A stretch of DNA of 64,000 nt from Klebsormidium nitens. Taxonomy: Eukaryota; Plantae; Klebsormidiophyceae. The notes under the pieces were generated by a model. It did no database searches. It saw only the letters and a program-made list of their open reading frames with translations, and had not been told where the DNA came from. Position numbers and translations under genes: made by a program. Positions 16,559-27,300 of this stretch are shown here, in pieces. The number at the start of each line of letters is the position of its first letter. The first letter of the stretch is position 1. The stretch lies in contig DF237074.1 in NCBI GenBank assembly GCA_000708835.1, positions 62,001-126,000 on the forward strand, in the 5' to 3' direction.

Positions 16559-19500
16559 CTAACCAGCCCCCGCCGTGTCCATTGCGTTGGGCTCTGAGGC
16601 AGCGTCGGAGAAGGCGACCTGGACTCTCAGAACCCCGGCCAACTTTTTGTCGTTCACATTCACAGTGCCGCCCTTCTCGCCCAGCAGTTCAACAAGAGAC
16701 TTGCTAAGATTTTCCCGCGTCATTTCTTCTAGAATTGGAGGTGCGGCCATGTACAGGTTCTCTCCCAAGTGCGAAACGCTGGGCTTGGACAGCTTGCCAC
16801 TGAAACGGTCGTCCGCAATAAGCTGCTTCATGAACTGCAGACAACGAAGCGAAGCTGTTTTGGAACGTTGGCGACTTGGACTGAAACGAAGAGAGTAGAG
16901 AACTGTTGCTTCAAGCAAGAAATCACGCTCGAGCGACCGTTCCCAAGTGCCCAAAGCAGCGGTGGTAAGACATGAGGACATCGCAGACAGAGTCACCACG
17001 TTACGACCATGCTCTACTTTTCCGGTAAGTCGAGAAAATCAGCAACAGCATCGAACATCTTTGCCGAAGGTTGCGAACTCGTGCAGTCTCGCAGAACCAT
17101 TCCAAATGATGTGAGTTCGCATTAGGGCGCACGGTGTGGAGGGCTGACCTGATCAAGGGTCGAATCTGCATCGGCATGAACAGGCACCCCAAGGCTGCAG
17201 ACGATGCACGACATGTCCTTTTCGTACGAAACTGTGTGTGTATAAACGCCCTGCGTGCCCACGTACCTGTGTGGCAAACGGAACAGTAAGTCAGTGAACA
17301 CATCAGACAACATAACTGCGAAATCTACCGAAGCAACAACAGGACCACCGAAGCTCGCTCGAAACTTCACTCGCCGACGAGGATTCGACAAATCAAAGCT
17401 CTGCCCACCCTCTGTACCTGCTCCTCGCAAGCTTGTAGAACGTTGGGAGGCGCTGCCGTTCATTGCAGCTTTTAGACGGCAGCTGATGAACAAAATACTT
17501 CCCTGCCTCAAACCGCGAATTGATACAGAAAGAGGGGCGCAGAGGCAAAAGATCCTCACGATAACAGTCGTCCATTTGTTGAGAAGCTGCTCACATCATG
17601 TAGTTGTCCATCCCGGAGCTGCACATGGTCGCGATCTTGAGCGCCTCCAAGGAACACGATGCCGCTATGATGGCGTTCGTGGACGCGATGGCGGGGATGA
17701 TGTTCTTGACGACCCCTTGCGTCAGCGAGTAGGTGACGCCCGAGATGTTGAATTGCTCTGCACGCTTCAAAGCCTGCACAAAAACGAACGGCTCAAATTA
17801 TGCATCTCACTTGGAAACGTCGTCAAAGAATGCAACGAGAGCGCTCGGAAGATGATTGAAGCGAACCTAACGAGAAACATTAGAAGGAATCTCAGGGATA
17901 CCTTTTTTGAGACTGACTGCCAGGCATAACTTGGACACTGCTCGTGCTGATTTATCAAAAAGTTTCTCAAACAAGATTATAATATGTTGCCTCTCTGTGA
18001 CCGTTTGACCAATAATGGCAGAACTTACAACAAACAGCTCAATTCGTGAGACATTAAGGTGGATTTCGTACCTGCTCGTACATCCACTTCATGTGCTCCG
18101 GATTATCAGCGTCAAACGTCTCGCTCGTTCGTTCCTGCCAAACGAAGCAGGATACGATATGTAAGCGACAATCTGATCACTCTAATTAAATCAAGCACAT
18201 CGAACTGTCGGCTGTGTAGGTGACATGACGAGTTTGTTCAAAAAAAGGAATGGGACGACGGAGAGCATCTTTTTTCCAGGTCAAAGACCCACTCGCAACA
18301 GAAAACGACCGATGACAGAGCGCAGCTCTTCCCCAATCAAAGGTGCACTGGCAACAGAAACACCCTAGTAGGTAACCACGGTCTCTCACCTGTCCCCACT
18401 GGATGAGATGTGCATATTCGATGCAGTGAGCAGGAGACCGCGGGGTTTCGGCCAGGGTGCAGAGGGGAAAGGTGGTCTGGGGCGGGAAGAGCCAGAGGGT
18501 ACAGTGGAAGCATGGCGTCACTCCAGGCAGGATCACACGAGCGTGACCTTTGAAGCCTTCTGTGCCTCCGTCCACCATCGGCTTGATGGTGCTCATGTCA
18601 AGCGTCCCATCAGCATCATATTCTGCAGCGATGTGGTTGGTCTCAAGAGTCTTGTTGCATTCTGGCGCAGGTAAGTCTCACACAGTGAGGCCAGTACATC
18701 CTAAGCCTGTCATTTACATACCACAGCCTTCTTGTCAAACTGAAAGCAGTACAGAAGTCTCAGCCAGCAGAAGCTGAGATCTGCGCCTTGCTATCCATAC
18801 GTTTGCTCCAACATTTGTTTCAGGTTAATACACAAATAAGGAGTCCAACGAAGGTAATCTTCCTCACCGAGGAAACTGCAGACGACAGAGTTGATGTAGC
18901 TTCTTGCCTCCAGCGAATCCAAGCCTAGAACAATGATGTGGAAGTCCTTATAGAACTCGTCTGGCTTCTCTTCGATCCGACAGTGATGAGGAATTACAGT
19001 TACCCCTTTCACTCTCTTCATCACCCGCTCCGCAGCTACAGTGGCTTTTGGCTTTCCAACATCATGCATCCTGCAGGCATTAAAGGAAGGCGTCCAAACC
19101 AAATGGAGTTGCCTAATGCATCCACTTGGGCAGTAAGCACCTGAAGTAAGCCTACAGATGAGACTTTCCTTCTGCTTCATTCCAACAAGGTTTGTCATGC
19201 ATCCTCAACAGTGGAATTGTAGCTTGAAAGTATTAAGATACATCATCTCCTCAAGTTACAAATGAAACAGAGAATAAAGAACCTTTCATAGATAAAAAAG
19301 GAGCAAAACGTTTTTTCCAGACCATCAATCGTCTTCAACCACATAATTTTCTGTGTGGTGTTGGCATGGTCACCCAACTCTATTTCCTAGACGAGCCCGT
19401 CACGATGTGGCATAAAAGCTTCCTTAACGTGTATAACCAAACTTATCAGTATCTTACCTGAAGAGGAATTGCCGATTGAGGTTTGAAACATCAATTGTAT

Positions 19501-19965
19501 CCATGTCAATCACGTCAATATGCCCAAACCCAGAGAGGGCCAGATCCTTCAGCAGCTCACAACCTAGTCCCCCGGCGCCGATGACGAGGACTTTAAAATC
19601 ATCTTGGAGGAAATCACGAATCTGCAGTTGATGGAAAAGGTGGTGGTACTTTTGGAATACATACTCAACCAGATACATGCTTGGCAGAATGAACAAGACC
19701 AAAATTCTGCAGAAGAATGTAATCAAAGGAAGCAATTGGTCAAGCCACTGCCTCTTTCTGGTGAGACAACGAAGCAACACAAATGATCGCAACAACTTGC
19801 AGGATTGATGTTCTGTTCAAGCAGCCAGTGGAATAAAAGTTGCAGTCCGAGAAGTACCTCTGGTGCTGGCTCAAAGCCAGGCCCAACAATGTTCCCTTGC
19901 CGTAAAAGCAAGTAATCCAGATCGCGCCACCTGCCCTCCATGTTGCCAGTGTCCATTGCGCCCAT
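16559..19965 (-). CDS. UBA3: NEDD8/RUB-activating enzyme E1 catalytic subunit (UBA3/ECR1), 8 exons, about 447 aa
   Basis: Exons 19965-19858, 19621-19458, 19070-18868, 18622-18390, 18134-18072, 17773-17595, 17266-17149, 16834-16559. Motifs: [55 protein letters not shown], catalytic-Cys region [39 protein letters not shown]. Confidence 0.96.
17255..17421 (-). repeat. Probable decayed copy of the UBA3 exon-7 acceptor junction inside intron 6 (period about 151 bp)
   Basis: Plus strand tgcccac-gtacctg at 17256-17269 versus tgcccac(cctct)gtacctg at 17402-17420. The copy keeps CAG|GTAC on the sense strand. Confidence 0.5.
19054..19205 (-). repeat. Decayed copy of the UBA3 exon-3 acceptor junction inside intron 2 (period about 133 bp)
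   Basis: Plus strand ttccaaca-tcatgcatcct at 19054-19072 versus ttccaaca(aggtttg)tcatgcatcct at about 19180-19205. Confidence 0.6.
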
Positions 19966-20089
19966 TCTCTCAGAACCAGATTGGATGAGTAAACATGAGA
20001 CGAAATCAAACCTCTTCCAAGCAAACCTTTTCAGATTTCAATCTGCACAACGTCCTAAACAGTAAACTTGGATGCATTTGAACTTCAAC

Positions 20090-20499: not shown

Positions 20500-20557
20500 G
20501 TCAATGTCAATGTCGATGTCAATGTCAATGTCGATGTCGATGTCAATGTCGATGTCA
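20500..20557. repeat. Hexamer microsatellite (TGTCRA)n, about 9.5 units
   Basis: gtcaatgtcaatgtcgatgtcaatgtcaatgtcgatgtcgatgtcaatgtcgatgtcag; the flanks carry several gtaacc(c) and tgtca motifs. Confidence 0.95.
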
Positions 20558-21089
20558 GTCTCATTGTCAACGTTGTAACCACTCCCGTAACCACCGACAA
20601 CTTGCAATAATTGTCACACTTCAGGTGCTTCCAGGTGGGTTGATCAAGAGTATTTCACACCTATTAGAGGGGCGGAGACACTAACAAAAGGAGTCTACTT
20701 TGATAGTTATGCTGCACTGAGGCTACTACTACTAGTAGTAGTACTGTAGATTCATATGCAACTTCAACCTTCAAAGCAGCATGACTTGTATGTTAACCGC
20801 TGTATTAACGAAAGGGTTAAGAGGGATGGGGTTTATCGACCGAGCCGAACCCGCAACCAGCTACAGTTCTGTTTATATTAAGTTTCTGCCAACGCATTAA
20901 CAGTATTCCGTTAGAATGCAAACCCACACCCCTTGTCCAAGGTTAAACTCTAATAACTAGGTAGACTCTGTTTGTGCATGGAGCTTGGCGCAGCTCAAGC
21001 TGTCCAGCACATCAAAAAGGCCGCCTATCCTAGAAATTTTGCTATTAATTTTGATCAGTCTGGTGTGTGCAATGCTGCCAATTGCCTAG

Positions 21090-22796
21090 ATGACCGCCAT
21101 AAGCCCCTCCTCAGCTGGGTGCTCCGGTGAAGGTGATGGTGATGTTCCTGGAAGAGAGCACGGCGGCTCTGTACCGCTCGCTCTAAGCCAGAGCTGGCTG
21201 TTGGAGCTGGTCTTGGAGAAAGTTCCAAAGACGAAGGACAGGAACTCGTGTTCTCTGGTCTGCAAAGATTTCAAGGACGCAGAGCGCCAGACTCGCAAGC
21301 ATGTACGCCTGCGATGCCTTCGGAAGGAGGTCAAGCTGATGCCTTCCTGCTTCCAAGCTGTCACAGATTTGGATCTTTCCAGCGTGTTCCCCCAGTTTGT
21401 TACGAAGTTCTCGTACCCAATTACTCAATTGAAGAACCTTGGAAGGTGTTTTCCAAATGTGCGGAGCCTCACGTTCTTTTGCGATGGATGCCAAGCTTGG
21501 TTGAAGAAGAACAGGCTTCCATTTGAGGGCACCTGGCCAATGCTGGAGACGGTGACGGTCCTCCAGCCTGGGTACCATCAATCGTATCCCTCTTACAAAG
21601 AATCTTCAGGTGGGAGGATAACTTACGGGCCACTTAGACTGAAGTTGCGCACAGGCTCCAGTGATGTCGAGCACTCTCAACGGGGTGGCATAGCTTTAAA
21701 GGAAGTACATTTCCACGTCGCTGGACAGTCAGAGTTGGAAGCACTGGCAGAGGATGATGTAGCCAACCTTGACACGTTGAGCTTCCATATGCAGAGAGCA
21801 GCTCTTCCTCCTCCTGACCTTTCAATTCTATCTTCTGCGAGGTTTCCCTTGCTTGAGAACGTCAGTGTCTCTGTCAATGTCTACAGAGGGACACAACACG
21901 TAGCCACAGATGACACCTTGAAAGAGTTTCTAGTTGCTTTGCCGCACTGTACACGGAGCCTCTGCGTCAATGGTCCTTCAGGTCCTGAGCTGACTATGAT
22001 CCCATTACCTTCAGAACTCGCAGGAAGCTTGCGCATCCTGCGCCTCAAATTGCAAAGGTCTCCTTGGCTTGTTGACACTCTTGTTGACCTTTCCCCAATC
22101 CTCGAGTGTACTTCGCTTGAAGTTCTTGAGTTGGCAAACCCGTCTGTGCTTACCGTCAGCACACATCTGGACGTTCTTGTGGCCATTCTTGAGAAGTGCA
22201 GAGCCCTCAGAAGCTTGAAACTTGATCTTTGGGATAAAGCTTTTAGTCAGACCCCTGAAGAGCTGTGTCTAGTCCTCAATCGCATTGCGCTAGCAAGTTC
22301 TGAGACGCTTACAGAGGTCGGCATCTCCACATTGTCTTGGTCAAAGGCAGGAGATATATTTGCTTCATTCAATCCATTCAGAAGCCAGGTAGCAAGCCTT
22401 GGTTGCAGAATCAGGACGCCAACCGGTCAAAGCTTGGAGACGGTTGGATGGCCTCTCCTGATCCACTTGGACCTTGAGTTGGTAGGAGTCCACGGGGCTC
22501 TCTCCATCGAGTGCCCCAATCTTCACACCCTGAGGTTGCGAATGGCACCTACGGAATTGAACCTTGTCGGGGAACATACAAAGCTCGCCTCAGCAGTGCT
22601 CCACTTCTCCAACACGCACAGCAATCGGGACATGCCTGATTCTATGCAGATATTCATGGAGCTTCAGAAGCTTAAGTCCTTGACCGAGCTTTCCGTGTTC
22701 AACATGACTCGCAGCGAAGCCTTTTGGAAAGACAAGAAAGGGGCCGAAGCAATGGCAGCTTTGCCATTCCTCGAGAAGCTGCTCATTTCATATTGA
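21090..22796 (+). CDS. F-box/LRR protein resembling MAX2/D3; 568-aa intronless ORF ending at a probably premature TGA (coding-like sequence continues to 22973, then a possible last exon 23231-23299)
   Basis: N-terminus DRNSCSLVCKDFKDAERQTRKHVRLR...LMPSCFQAVTDLDLS...CFPNVRSL...WP and many LxxLxL repeats. The same frame continues after the TGA with another LRR (PLLASPSLTELRV), a GTGAGT donor at 22974 and a cttattgcag acceptor at 23230. MAX2 similarity is judged from remembered sequence, not from a search. Confidence 0.75.
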   Translation: MTAISPSSAGCSGEGDGDVPGREHGGSVPLALSQSWLLELVLEKVPKTKDRNSCSLVCKDFKDAERQTRKHVRLRCLRKEVKLMPSCFQAVTDLDLSSVFPQFVTKFSYPITQLKNLGRCFPNVRSLTFFCDGCQAWLKKNRLPFEGTWPMLETVTVLQPGYHQSYPSYKESSGGRITYGPLRLKLRTGSSDVEHSQRGGIALKEVHFHVAGQSELEALAEDDVANLDTLSFHMQRAALPPPDLSILSSARFPLLENVSVSVNVYRGTQHVATDDTLKEFLVALPHCTRSLCVNGPSGPELTMIPLPSELAGSLRILRLKLQRSPWLVDTLVDLSPILECTSLEVLELANPSVLTVSTHLDVLVAILEKCRALRSLKLDLWDKAFSQTPEELCLVLNRIALASSETLTEVGISTLSWSKAGDIFASFNPFRSQVASLGCRIRTPTGQSLETVGWPLLIHLDLELVGVHGALSIECPNLHTLRLRMAPTELNLVGEHTKLASAVLHFSNTHSNRDMPDSMQIFMELQKLKSLTELSVFNMTRSEAFWKDKKGAEAMAALPFLEKLLISY

Positions 22797-24335
22797 GAGG
22801 ATTCCGCTTATGTCTGGGCAATCAATGATTTCTCTAAAATCCACGAGAGTGCGGGAGAGTTTTTCAAGCCGCTTTTGGCTTCTCCATCATTGACAGAGCT
22901 GCGTGTGCATGAGCCGGCTCTAGAGAAAAGCACCGAGAGGATCTTCGAGAAGCTGTATGGACATCGGCAAGAGGTGAGTCACCCAAGAATCAAAAATTTC
23001 CTTCCTCATCGAAGTGTGGCGCAATTGAGCAACCACGAAAGTGCGAACCAAGGGACCTTGTTTCTGTTGAACACACTTTGCTTGCACTGTGGCTCGATTC
23101 CTGAGCGCCAACTATAGACAGCTGGCACATGATGGAGCTGACTTTTGATAGAGTCTTTCATTTTATCAGGCCGGGCTAGTTGTATTCTGCCCTGCCATGA
23201 TGGTTCCGTTGATTCCTTATCTTATTGCAGGCTAGCTCTGTTCGGTGGCTCCGCTCAATGGGGCCATCTTCCTCAGAAGGCCCAGATGCTGAAGGATAGG
23301 TTGGTAACATCGCAATTGTCAAGCTAGAGTGGCGCAGGCTAATTCTGATTGGACGGAGAGTCGTTTACGAGCTTTGCTAAGAGATTGTATGCAATGAACA
23401 CTCGATTCTCGCGAAATTCAAGTGCGATCCGGTAGATCTTTTTATTACAGTGATCTTTCAATATCTTCATGGCCCCCTACAAGTGAGATCAAAACTCCTC
23501 CCTTTCCAATCGGAGTAACAAGACAAAGATTGTACTAATGGCTCCTATGCATGAACCAGGCTAGCTCAATACAATTGCAAGCAATGACTCATGAGCTGTT
23601 GTCATGTGCAATCGCGCTGTACTAGATATATGTGCATTGCACTTGGCCGGTATGATCCACCGGCGTTTAATTCAAAGCAACGTAAATAACCATGGTATAT
23701 AGGATAGCTCAAAACGAACATACATGTATAGAACGGCTTGAGGGTCGGTAATTGTCGAATTGTCACATTGTAATGTAAAAACGACGAGTCATTGCATTAT
23801 TTCTTCAATAGCTAGTACATGTACCATCTCTTTCTCTTCAGGAGCCTGCGGTAATACTGGGCCGGATCTATGCAGTGGCACTCGCATCTCTTTTTGAGCT
23901 GATAGTCCAGGTACTATCTTATTTTATTTACTTGTATCTGACTCTGAGTGATAGAGCGTTAGTCGATCGTTAGTGATATAATGAGCCATATGCAAGCAGG
24001 ATGAGCATGTACATGCTTGTGTACATGCGTGGAATCAGACGCCTGCAAATCGGAAGCTTTCGTTTGCTCTCAGCAAAGCTTTCGACAGCAAGACTTGAGA
24101 TCAGCGAAGGAAACAGACTCGTTCTGCAACAACTCTCAACACCTGCTCTACCAGGCCAATCCAACATACCTTTATGTACACACTGGTACTACTCCCCCGC
24201 TCAGACTCTGGAACATAATCTTCTATACCTGCGGCGCCAGCCGGTTCCATCGCCTGTCGACGACTTCTTAAGAACCTATTGCATCTTTCAACCGATCTTT
24301 TCCACCATCGTGAACAAGCGCTTCTCCTCTCTGCC

Positions 24336-27300
24336 TCACTCCCATTCGACCGTTGCGGGCGGTTTTGACGTAATGTCGTACACGACCCGGTTGACGGAAG
24401 CGACGGTGTTGCAGATCTTGGCGGAGACGGACGCCAGGAACTTGGGCTCGAACTGGAACCTGCAATCGAAACATGCGGTCTCAGTCAGTCTTTGCAGATT
24501 TTGACTAGAGATGTAGCCGCCGTCACGAGACTCTAGTCACGTTGCTTTTCCAGCAACCAGAACAAGCAGCCTCTTCGCAAGCGGCCTCTCTGAAGTTTCT
24601 GCAAGCACCTCTTCTGTTCATTCTCGAATAAACTTCACTTCCGCCCATTTACTGCAGATTCTTGAACAAACGACTCTCATTGCAATCAGCCCTTTCCAAT
24701 TGTCGGCGAAAACCGGGGGCAGGAAGCAACATACGATATACTGCAAACCAGAAGCACCTTGTTCATGGCCTTGCTCGTCGTAGTCGCAAAGGAGGACGAA
24801 AGCACGACTTCGCTCTTTAAAAGCCCCGCCAATGGAGTGTCCACACGGGGGCAAGAGCACAGCACACAAAACTGTAGCTTTTAGGGCCACACACAGAAGT
24901 CTCCGGACCAGCTTCCATTTGCAGCCAAACTCCGCGTCCATCAAGTGTGCCCCGGGCGGCAAAAGGAGGACTAATGGGACCTTAGCGGCAAAAAAGATAA
25001 GGGGCTCACCAGTCCGCCGTCATGCCGTCCTGGCTGGTGATGGCCCGCAGCGCGACCACGTGCGTGTGCGTGCGCTTGTCGCCCTGCACGCCGACGCTCC
25101 GGATCGGGAGAAACACCGCAAACGCCTGCCAGATCTGGTCGTACAGGCCCGCGTCGCGGATGGCGTTGATGAACACCTCGTCCACCTGGGGGGCGCGGAA
25201 GAGCGCATTAGACAACACTGCGGGGTGGAGCGGTTGGCGAGTCTTCTGTCTGGGGTGGAGAAAATCGTGTGCTGTCACGGCGAGACACGCGCGCATGCTG
25301 ACCAACAAAGGCGTTGCCACCGATGACCGATTTGCGAAAGCAACGAGGGCGTGCAGACCTTGGACGACCGTGCGCTCCGTTTGTTTTGGCGCAATCTCGC
25401 CCCAAATCGCACGCGACTAGCTGCCCTAACTCAAGTCTCCCTAAACAGAAACTTCACGCCAGACTTTGCAGCCAACTGATCTGCACTGGGCATTTTCTAA
25501 CTTGACAGACCACTCGAAAGACCCATCTTGACTTCCTTGGAAGTCTGCGTGCGAAAAGCGAAGTACATTCGTTAAGTTCACCAACCCAGCATATGCCATT
25601 CCGCAAAAACCTCAGCAGATCGTGACCGCAAAAGCGCCCCAAGCATACAGGTAAGCTCAGCAACGAGCAGACGTATTTCCCCGCCCCACTTCCCGCCCTA
25701 CCTGCAGCGCGTCCCGGCCGTCACGTCCCCGAGCACGCCGCACTCGATGCACTCGTTGAATTCACCGACCCGACCTTTGCAGGCAACTCTGCGTCGAACG
25801 ATTCCCGGGAGAGCGCCCCAAACAGAATTCAAAAACACACAAACGTCTCCAGATCCAAAGACGTCTCTGTGCGCGCCTCACCTCCCGCAGTACCTTCAGC
25901 GCGTCCCCCGCTGTCATGTCCCCGAGCTACGCCGCACTCAATGCACTCATTTTCAACGGACTTGACATTTGCAGGCACCAAAAGATACCCGCAAGAGCGC
26001 CCCAAACACATGAAAAAGCCTAATCCGAACATGTCCAGCGGGCGACTCACCTCCCGGAGCACCTGCAGCGCGTCCCCCGCCGTCACGTCCCCGAGCACGC
26101 GCACCGCAAGGCCCGGCCCCGGGAACGGGTGCCGCCGCAGGAACCCGACGGGCACGTCCAGCAGCTTCCCCATGGCGCGGACCTCGTCTTTGAACAACCA
26201 TTTAAGGGGCTCCACCAGCTTGAACTTGAGGTCTTTGGGCAGCCCACCAACGTTGTGGTGGCTCTTGATTGTGTGGCTGTGCTTCTTGTCGCTGCCGGGG
26301 GGAGGGCACGACTCGATGACGTCGGGGTAGAGCGTGCCCTGGACCAGGATGCTGGGCAGCTTGCCGTACTTCTTCTGGATCTGGGGGGGAGGGAAACGGG
26401 AGAAAGTGAGTATTAGTACGGAGTTCGAAAGAGAAATGGCGTAACGTTGGGATGGGCCCGAGTGACTGAACGAGGGCACGACTCCAAGCGATGAAGCTGG
26501 GGCGTTGTGGCTCGCTGCAATCTCCCGCGTGATTCTGCTTTACCAGTCTGACGGAGCCCTCAATCTGCCGTGTCGCTTGGTTTAAGACCAGCAAATGTCG
26601 TCATCGTAGGTCTGCATGAGTGCACTTTGGTCCATCAGAAGATGGTGGACTCGACCCGTCCAGTATCTGGATTCAAAGCTCGTGGGAGGACAGGCCTGCT
26701 TTTTATCAGCACCCAGATCCCAGTCACCTTTTCAACCTTTACACGAAGGTTGTCGCATTTTGAGTCGTCGACTGTGGGAAAAACGAAGCCTTCCAAACCA
26801 TCCAAACCGTGGATGCTGTCGCATCCACGAGCAATGCGACAGCACATGTCAATCGACTTTGATTCGTATCCAGATAAGCAGCTCACCTCAAGCGCAAACT
26901 CGTCAAATACTGCGATGAACTCGCCCCCGATGATCTTGCGCTTCTTCTCGGGGTCGGTCACGCCGGCGAGCTTGCTCAGGAAGCGCTCCGAGGCGTCCAC
27001 GCACGTCACCGGCAGGTGCAGGTCCTTCTCAAACGTCGCCATCACCCGCTCTTGCTCCTTGTACCTGTAGGGGCGAAAGGAAAAAGGTCGGAATCTGTCC
27101 AAAAAGGAGATTTTGAACTGGCTGAACGAGCGCGCAAAATCTGAACCCTCGAAAGAAGGTGCGAAGTCCGTGGCTTTCAACGAGAAGGGGCGAAGTTTGT
27201 AACAAAGCTCTGGACAGATGAGGGATGAATCCTGGAATCGTTCAAAAGAAGTAGCGGGAAACCGTTGTTCGAATCTGGAGCCCATGGAGCACAGAAAGGA

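Follow-up and report, generated by a model that had tools for sequence, protein, structure and literature searches.

Does an early-diverging streptophyte alga have a MAX2-like F-box protein in karrikin/KAI2-type signalling? The question is raised by a gene of Klebsormidium nitens that lies in a 64,000-nucleotide stretch of contig DF237074.1 (assembly GCA_000708835.1, positions 62,001 to 126,000), the whole of which is called the window here. An open reading frame (ORF) on its + strand, confirmed in the ORF list at 21090..22796, starts with ATG and specifies a product of 568 amino acids (aa). The initial annotation, made from the sequence alone, proposed an F-box/leucine-rich repeat (LRR) protein of the MAX2/D3 type. 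The nearest known family of the protein is indeed MAX2/D3, by sequence, by profile and by structure. Judged from alignments and trees, the protein is a true, distant MAX2 relative in a multi-copy family that is sister to MAX2, and it is not a MAX2 orthologue. The window copy itself is probably disabled. In the account that we favour, and hold to be reasonably probable, the gene belongs to an F-box/LRR family of the MAX2 superfamily that lies outside the MAX2 orthogroup and underwent an expansion in Klebsormidium-type algae, and this member was disabled or truncated recently.

MAX2/D3/ORE9 (structures 5HZG, 6BRO and 9KKX) is the F-box/LRR adaptor of the SKP1-cullin-F-box (SCF) complex SCF-MAX2 in D14 and KAI2 signalling, with SMXL proteins as its targets. 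Klebsormidium has proto-KAI2 proteins, and no obvious MAX2 has been reported from it (PMC5490202). MAX2 was found to be single-copy, with none in the Klebsormidium genome (Bythell-Douglas et al., 2017; PMC5490202), and earlier BLAST-based reports of 'MAX2-like' Klebsormidium sequences (Wang et al., 2015) were judged 'only very weakly similar' (PMC5490202). The origin of MAX2 has been placed in charophytes, and SMXL is reported to be absent from algae (Walker et al., 2019; PMC6728956). Since 'MAX2-like' Klebsormidium sequences were already on record, the lead followed here is not new in outline. The present results agree with the literature that there is no MAX2 proper; what is new is that the algal genes are genuine full-length MAX2 homologues in a separate, partly decaying sister clade, possibly one common to liverworts.

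MAX2/D3 as the nearest family

When the window protein was compared with PDB sequences by phmmer, the first match was chain 9kkx_C (E 4e-7, residues 38-131), which is Striga hermonthica MAX2 (ShMAX2; PMC12639087); TIR1 and COI1 stood at 0.07 and 0.12. A profile of the family (A3) gave 2e-13 for ShMAX2, 3e-5 for rice D3, 2.5e-4 for TIR1 and 2e-3 for COI1 in the same sequences. TIR1/AFB and COI1 share the F-box_5 type of F-box and the overall architecture of an F-box followed by an LRR solenoid, and they are clearly more distant than MAX2. The N-terminal resemblance to MAX2 that had been remarked in the initial annotation is borne out by these matches.

The same profile was searched against 1.84 billion representative proteins and had 71 matches at E <= 1e-3. 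About 27 of the 71 are full-length relatives, namely Klebsormidium-type proteins, including K. nitens KFL_000150170. They are followed by a metagenomic protein, P0024 (E 7e-24, full length), with P0028 of the liverwort Riccia sorocarpa. The remaining matches cover only profile positions ~9-145. A sample of these short matches was named or placed by BLAST clustering, and it comprised Selaginella MAX2 homolog A (1.8e-11), MAX2 of Hibiscus, Melia and Rhynchospora, and proteins of Spirogloea, Mesotaenium, Pteridium, Diphasiastrum and a second zygnematophyte MAX2-like group, all of them MAX2 or MAX2-like. Weak matches outside MAX2 came from two unrelated LRR proteins and from a cluster of Coleochaete proteins of TIR1/COI1-like type (E 5e-5 to 3e-4). 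The matches named in this search of 1.84 billion proteins include no TIR1/AFB, COI1 or EBF protein from a land plant, and the search, which was exhaustive, did not return a MAX2-proper protein from K. nitens.

Could the protein nevertheless be a generic FBXL protein, its likeness to MAX2 coming from a shared F-box_5 type and unspecific LRR periodicity? In direct HMMER comparisons with MAX2, only ~110 N-terminal residues are significant, as such an origin would have it, and a feature search of the ESM Atlas returned generic F-box clusters only and is not discriminating. Profile-profile alignment reaches much further. The family (A7) and MAX2 proper (A8) align by hhalign with 99.9% probability (E 2.9e-31) over 542 collinear columns, starting in the F-box and reaching the counterpart of MAX2 'LRKLFVHGT..LLRI..LRDVQLR'; a control made of the Coleochaete TIR1/COI1-like protein and two FBXL/VFB proteins gave E 7e-14. 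Two further resemblances of the initial annotation fall within these 542 columns: 'SETLTEVGIS' in the middle of the protein, and a C-terminal one, where 'LPFLEKLLI' stands opposite MAX2 'LRKLFVHGT'. With the first 131 residues removed, the LRR part alone still matched MAX2 at E 4e-14 over 376 columns; the control reached 4e-8 over 189 columns. Similarity is therefore not confined to the F-box. MAX2 and the control, however, also score highly with each other in the LRR-only comparison (E 6e-17), and its specificity is thus moderate. A bridge is provided by P0024, which matches the Klebsormidium family over its full length and matches ShMAX2 (2e-19) and D3 (2e-10) out to ~residue 506.

Predicted structures also argue against a generic protein. 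The AlphaFold2 (AF2) model of the window protein (predicted local distance difference test, pLDDT, 80.6; predicted template modelling score, pTM, 0.78) is a confident one in which strand and helix alternate in repeats between aa 70 and 567, and with the F-box_5 domain (PF18511, E 1.5e-8) this supports the reading as an F-box/LRR protein. F-box_5 is the sole significant Pfam domain; LRR matches are sub-threshold. Foldseek placed ShMAX2/D3 chains in all of the top 14 ranks (2e-12 to 3e-7), with TIR1 at rank 15 and COI1 at rank 22. For an intact relative, P0002 (residues 1-631; pLDDT 80.0), VIA-align listed four D3 chains first (Z 21-23, 459-480 residues, model 28-627 against D3 34-715), then generic LRR proteins with far shorter coverage; TIR1 and COI1 were not in its top 50. 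The comparison with the D3 structure proposed at the outset therefore puts D3/MAX2 ahead of TIR1 and COI1. The phylogeny below also sets the ingroup, MAX2 included, apart from the outgroups (94/89). That the protein is a generic FBXL is very unlikely.

MAX2 and the window family share a layout in which an F-box of the F-box_5 type leads straight into a horseshoe of ~20 LRRs, with a terminal helix. Over the N-terminal ~110 residues the likeness is clear ('DRNS.SLVC...ER.TR..L.LR....L..P.CF..VT.LDLS', 'FP.V..LT'); identity to D3/ShMAX2 in structural alignments is ~18-20%. The window protein differs from MAX2 in being without the long acidic insertion, 'DYWPP', 'HGT..EH', 'LRDVQLR.DYYPAPE' and the 'LP' that starts the F-box. 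In clades A to C of the family this 'LP' is replaced by 'LSQSW'. The F-box_5 match of the window protein begins at profile position 9, the usual 'LP' start being unmatched; the same partial match is seen in seven of nine family members, and in MAX2 and the outgroup the match begins at position 4-5. The Pfam domain Transp_inhibit is absent from the Klebsormidium family, MAX2 and the outgroup alike, and is uninformative as a discriminator of TIR1/COI1.

A probable sister family rather than MAX2

Is the gene, then, the MAX2 of Klebsormidium? A first maximum-likelihood (ML) tree (30 rows, 643 columns, LG+C20+F+G4) was rooted on three outgroups, a thin set consisting of one Coleochaete TIR1/COI1-like protein (P0062) and two FBXL/VFB proteins; land-plant TIR1/COI1 are in neither of the trees described here. 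The ingroup was split from the outgroups at 94/89, P0062 going with the latter. The ingroup has two sister clades. Clade I (97/92) unites MAX2 proper (100/99, including Spirogloea and Mesotaenium) with a Spirogloea/Closterium MAX2-like pair. Clade II (97/94) unites a liverwort group with all the Klebsormidium lineages. Clade II contains a core family (100/99), in which the window gene pairs with P0002 (100/100). The topology was unchanged in a second tree, to which Marchantia paleacea Mapa_010722 was added and from which the three longest branches were removed.

Residue conservation tells a similar story. A set of 11 MAX2 proteins has 80 invariant positions. The window protein retains the MAX2 residue at 36 of them, the outgroups at 26-29 and Spirogloea P0052 at 50. 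Those kept by the window protein lie mostly in the first ~130 residues and at LRR leucines. 'HGT', 'LRD' and 'DYYPAPE' are not kept, and R641/D642, D648/Y649 and E670 (Hibiscus numbering) are changed. The C-terminal LRR and terminal helix that go with the MAX2 orthogroup are missing from the window ORF, as its TGA precedes them. Orthology to MAX2 is therefore not upheld: the gene falls in a separate multi-copy clade in the rooted trees and is without the C-terminal hallmark motifs. K. nitens has at least five of these related genes, and the Logan sample SRR23617307 has three.

The K. nitens paralogues KFL_000900220, KFL_000150170, KFL_005070070 and KFL_001930100 are annotated as hypothetical or as 'COI1 F-box domain-containing'. 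They belong to the same family or to neighbouring clade II lineages, have the same N-terminal signature and are 28-42% identical. The Marchantiales 'F-box/LRR-repeat protein' group, which is uncharacterised, comprises Riccia sorocarpa R1sor_023085, Marchantia paleacea Mapa_010722 and P0024. In both trees it is the sister of the Klebsormidium family (97/94; SH-like approximate likelihood ratio test, SH-aLRT, 94), and P0024 is the full-length profile match noted above; identity to the Klebsormidium family is only ~20-25%, and in its LRR part the group scores higher against MAX2 (hhalign 162) than against the algal family (119). The position of the group is insecure: an approximately unbiased (AU) test in which it was moved to the MAX2 side disfavoured that placement without rejecting it (p = 0.062).

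These last results bear on the view that the family is the Klebsormidium (co-)orthologue of MAX2, descended from the same ancestral gene, its intact members being partners of proto-KAI2. With the liverwort group on the MAX2 side, the Klebsormidium clade would be sister to all other MAX2-type genes and hence a co-orthologue, and the higher LRR scores of the liverwort proteins against MAX2 point the same way. Moreover, no known family is nearer than MAX2 in sequence, profile or fold, and the failure of the exhaustive search to find a MAX2 proper in K. nitens is in line with PMC5490202. Yet the best trees join the family with the liverwort lineage, which implies an old duplication, and the low count of MAX2-invariant residues, not far above that of the outgroups, goes together with the absence of 'HGT..EH' and 'LRDVQLR.DYYPAPE'. 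Nor does a family that is multi-copy and decaying, with the window copy truncated, resemble MAX2, which is reported to be strictly single-copy (PMC5490202). On balance we consider co-orthology unlikely, at perhaps one chance in a handful.

A little less probable still is an older history that gives the family a role of its own. An F-box gene ancestral to MAX2 would have been duplicated before the Klebsormidiophyceae split off from the other streptophytes, one copy becoming MAX2 and the other giving rise to an expanded, fast-evolving Klebsormidium family and to a single Marchantiales lineage. Klebsormidium would be without MAX2 proper, and intact members of the sister family would serve there as the F-box partners of proto-KAI2, so that a signalling module of KAI2 and an F-box protein would predate MAX2.

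Two observations on other lineages may be added. In Marchantiales liverworts, P0024, P0028 and P0111 represent a lineage related to MAX2 and yet distinct from it; the literature describes MAX2 as without long-standing duplicates. Zygnematophytes have a second MAX2-like group, consisting of P0052, P0086 and P0087 of Spirogloea muscicola and P0033 of Closterium sp. NIES-68. It matches ShMAX2 at E 2e-45, exists beside a MAX2 orthologue (P0055) and is sister to MAX2 proper in the trees.

A premature stop in a partly decaying family

Homologues align along the entire length of the 568-aa product, and those found in a word search extend 70-100 aa past the end of the window ORF. The frame in the window also goes on: the 59 codons after the TGA read '...FFKPLLASPSLTELRVHEP...KLYGHRQE' and match the homologues P0001-P0003. 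In the joint alignment, the TGA falls at the position of the MAX2 invariant 'HGT', where the last LRR starts. The P0002 model has a helix (586-599), a strand (606-610) and a helix (612-626) here, forming a further LRR and the terminal helix; this segment aligns to the C-terminus of rice D3, and its equivalent in the window gene lies past the TGA. A syntenic orthologous locus, L001 (Logan sample SRR23617307), with 83% nucleotide identity and flanks that match, has CAA (Gln) at the position of the TGA and the same splice donor. A frame disrupted relative to intact homologues, with conserved coding sequence downstream, is what a pseudogene would have.

By homology, a protein of this family would bind SKP1 through its N-terminal F-box, and with its horseshoe of ~20 repeats it would recruit substrates or receptors to an SCF ubiquitin ligase. 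The nonsense codon, codon 569 of ~650, would remove the last LRR and the C-terminal helix, which in D3/MAX2 cap the solenoid and take part in receptor engagement. With these lost, the window gene is most likely recently inactivated, and at best C-terminally truncated. The ancestral codon may have been CGA (Arg), from which one CpG transition each would lead to TGA in the window and to CAA in L001.

The window gene is not alone in this respect. Four of the six family loci examined are disrupted by stops or frameshifts, each differently, which leaves P0002 (667 aa) and P0003 (665 aa) as the only intact ones. L001 (3479-5128) has deletions of 1 nt and 2 nt at window positions 21236 and 21689, ~450 nt apart; as a result the F-box and first LRRs are no longer in frame with the start codon, and protein identity over them is still 84%. 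The locus of KFL_000900220 (K. nitens DF237039.1, GCA_000708835.1; L003:4895-5760) is shifted in frame by 1 nt near 'QKCRL', and an in-frame TAA immediately precedes the conserved C-terminal segment, whose coding sequence goes on past the stop. The annotated 448-aa model appears to splice around the frameshift and ends at the TAA, while its orthologue in another species is the intact P0003. Finally, L005:489-2414 (SRR14092358; also L006 and L007) has a mid-gene in-frame TGA at codon 319 ('AGRL*TLRLNL'), a second ORF completing the protein; the identical 318-aa product was called in three separate runs.

Along with the moderate LRR-only specificity and the unrejected AU placement noted above, several points weigh against our preferred account. 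Over 622 codons the dN/dS between the window gene and L001 is 0.31 (dS 0.41), rather than near 1; the part past the stop has 0.27, and the F-box with the first LRRs 0.20. Exons 1 and 2 entered the searches as separate pieces, and the stop was entered as X in the joint-alignment and lineage-rate comparisons. Lineage-specific amino-acid changes are symmetric between the window gene and L001. A dN/dS of 0.31 over the whole exon, its post-stop part included, together with symmetric rates, means that the gene is not an old pseudogene; the substitution pattern indicates purifying selection through most of its divergence from the orthologue. The stop could also be a strain polymorphism or an assembly error.

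If the TGA had such an origin, the gene would be intact in the organism and a protein of ~650 aa would be made. The low dN/dS past the stop, the symmetric rates and the 96% identity of the last exon to that of the orthologue all accord with this. TGA and CAA, however, differ at two positions, which is not what a simple miscall gives. Independent stops and frameshifts in three other loci, one with the same product in three runs, imply in addition that real disruptions are common in the family. We therefore think an intact gene improbable, about as much so as co-orthology with MAX2. Metagenome contigs searched with the exact flanks, the stop codon left free, gave no match, and an exact product match to the 568-aa ORF is not on record.

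Might the stops instead be got round, through programmed readthrough or the splicing of an unusual intron? TGA accounts for two of the three in-frame stops, the frames downstream are conserved, and an in-frame GT..AG pair that removes the stop does exist (22695-22799, 105 nt). But the third stop is TAA, two loci are frameshifted instead, and the stops are at unrelated positions. The homologue alignment has no conserved Cys/Sec position at the stop site, and a selenocysteine or readthrough codon was rejected on this ground and on that of the TAA and frameshifts elsewhere. The 105-nt intron, the only in-frame GT..AG option, was likewise rejected as the main reading: its splice signals are poor, and splicing it out would cost the protein a conserved LRR for which the orthologue has stop-free coding sequence. 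Bypass is hardly to be expected.

Disruptions that differ from locus to locus, on a background of purifying selection, suggest recent independent inactivations, and the family would thus evolve by birth-and-death turnover. Candidate partners of algal KAI2 and SKP1 are the intact genes of clades B (P0002) and C (P0003) rather than the truncated window copy, and the window locus should not be scored as 'MAX2 present'.

Gene model and neighbourhood

The gene model predicted from these comparisons has an exon 1 (21090-22973) that contains the in-frame TGA, an intron (22974-23230) and an exon 2 (23231-23299); the features are collected in Table 1. Exon 1 ends with GAG followed by GTGAGT. In the paralogues L002, L004 and L005, a GT(A/G)AG donor similarly lies a few codons past the 'KLYG' motif, and the clade C locus of KFL_000900220 (L003/L004) likewise has one large exon with the GT donor just past 'KLYG'. 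The intron is only ~63% identical to that of L001 in nucleotides, and the flanks of the terminal exon have diverged between the two loci. Of the 'long intronless ORF' of the initial annotation, the ORF stands and the absence of introns does not: it is a large exon 1 with a premature stop, followed by one 3' intron.

Table 1. Features of the MAX2-related locus and its surroundings (window positions)
Feature	Position	Strand	Basis
Codons 1-568 of large exon 1: disordered N-terminus (aa 1-34), F-box, LRR solenoid	21090..22793	+	ORF list, AF2, homologue alignment
F-box (aa 38-71), Pfam F-box_5 PF18511	21201..21302	+	E 1.5e-8, over cut-off
In-frame TGA, codon 569	22794..22796	+	Sequence; L001 nucleotide alignment; joint alignment
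59 further in-frame codons, equivalent of last LRR and terminal helix	22797..22973	+	Homologue match, dN/dS 0.27
Predicted intron, GTGAGT ... TTGCAG	22974..23230	+	Donor common to L001, L002, L004, L005
Predicted terminal exon, 22 codons and TAG	23231..23299	+	66/69 nt identical to L001, same frame and stop
Upstream neighbour, ThiF/E2_bind gene, NEDD8-activating-enzyme type	17144..19969	-	Synteny with genes called in L001
Downstream neighbour, GMP synthase C-terminal-domain gene	25007..26402	-	Synteny with genes called in L001
Imperfect hexanucleotide microsatellite, GTCAAT/GTCGAT, ~10 units	20500..20559		

No second copy or tandem paralogue of the gene was found by tblastn within the 64,000-nt window. 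That a neddylation enzyme adjoins an SCF F-box gene is probably a coincidence. The microsatellite lies ~530 bp upstream of the start codon.

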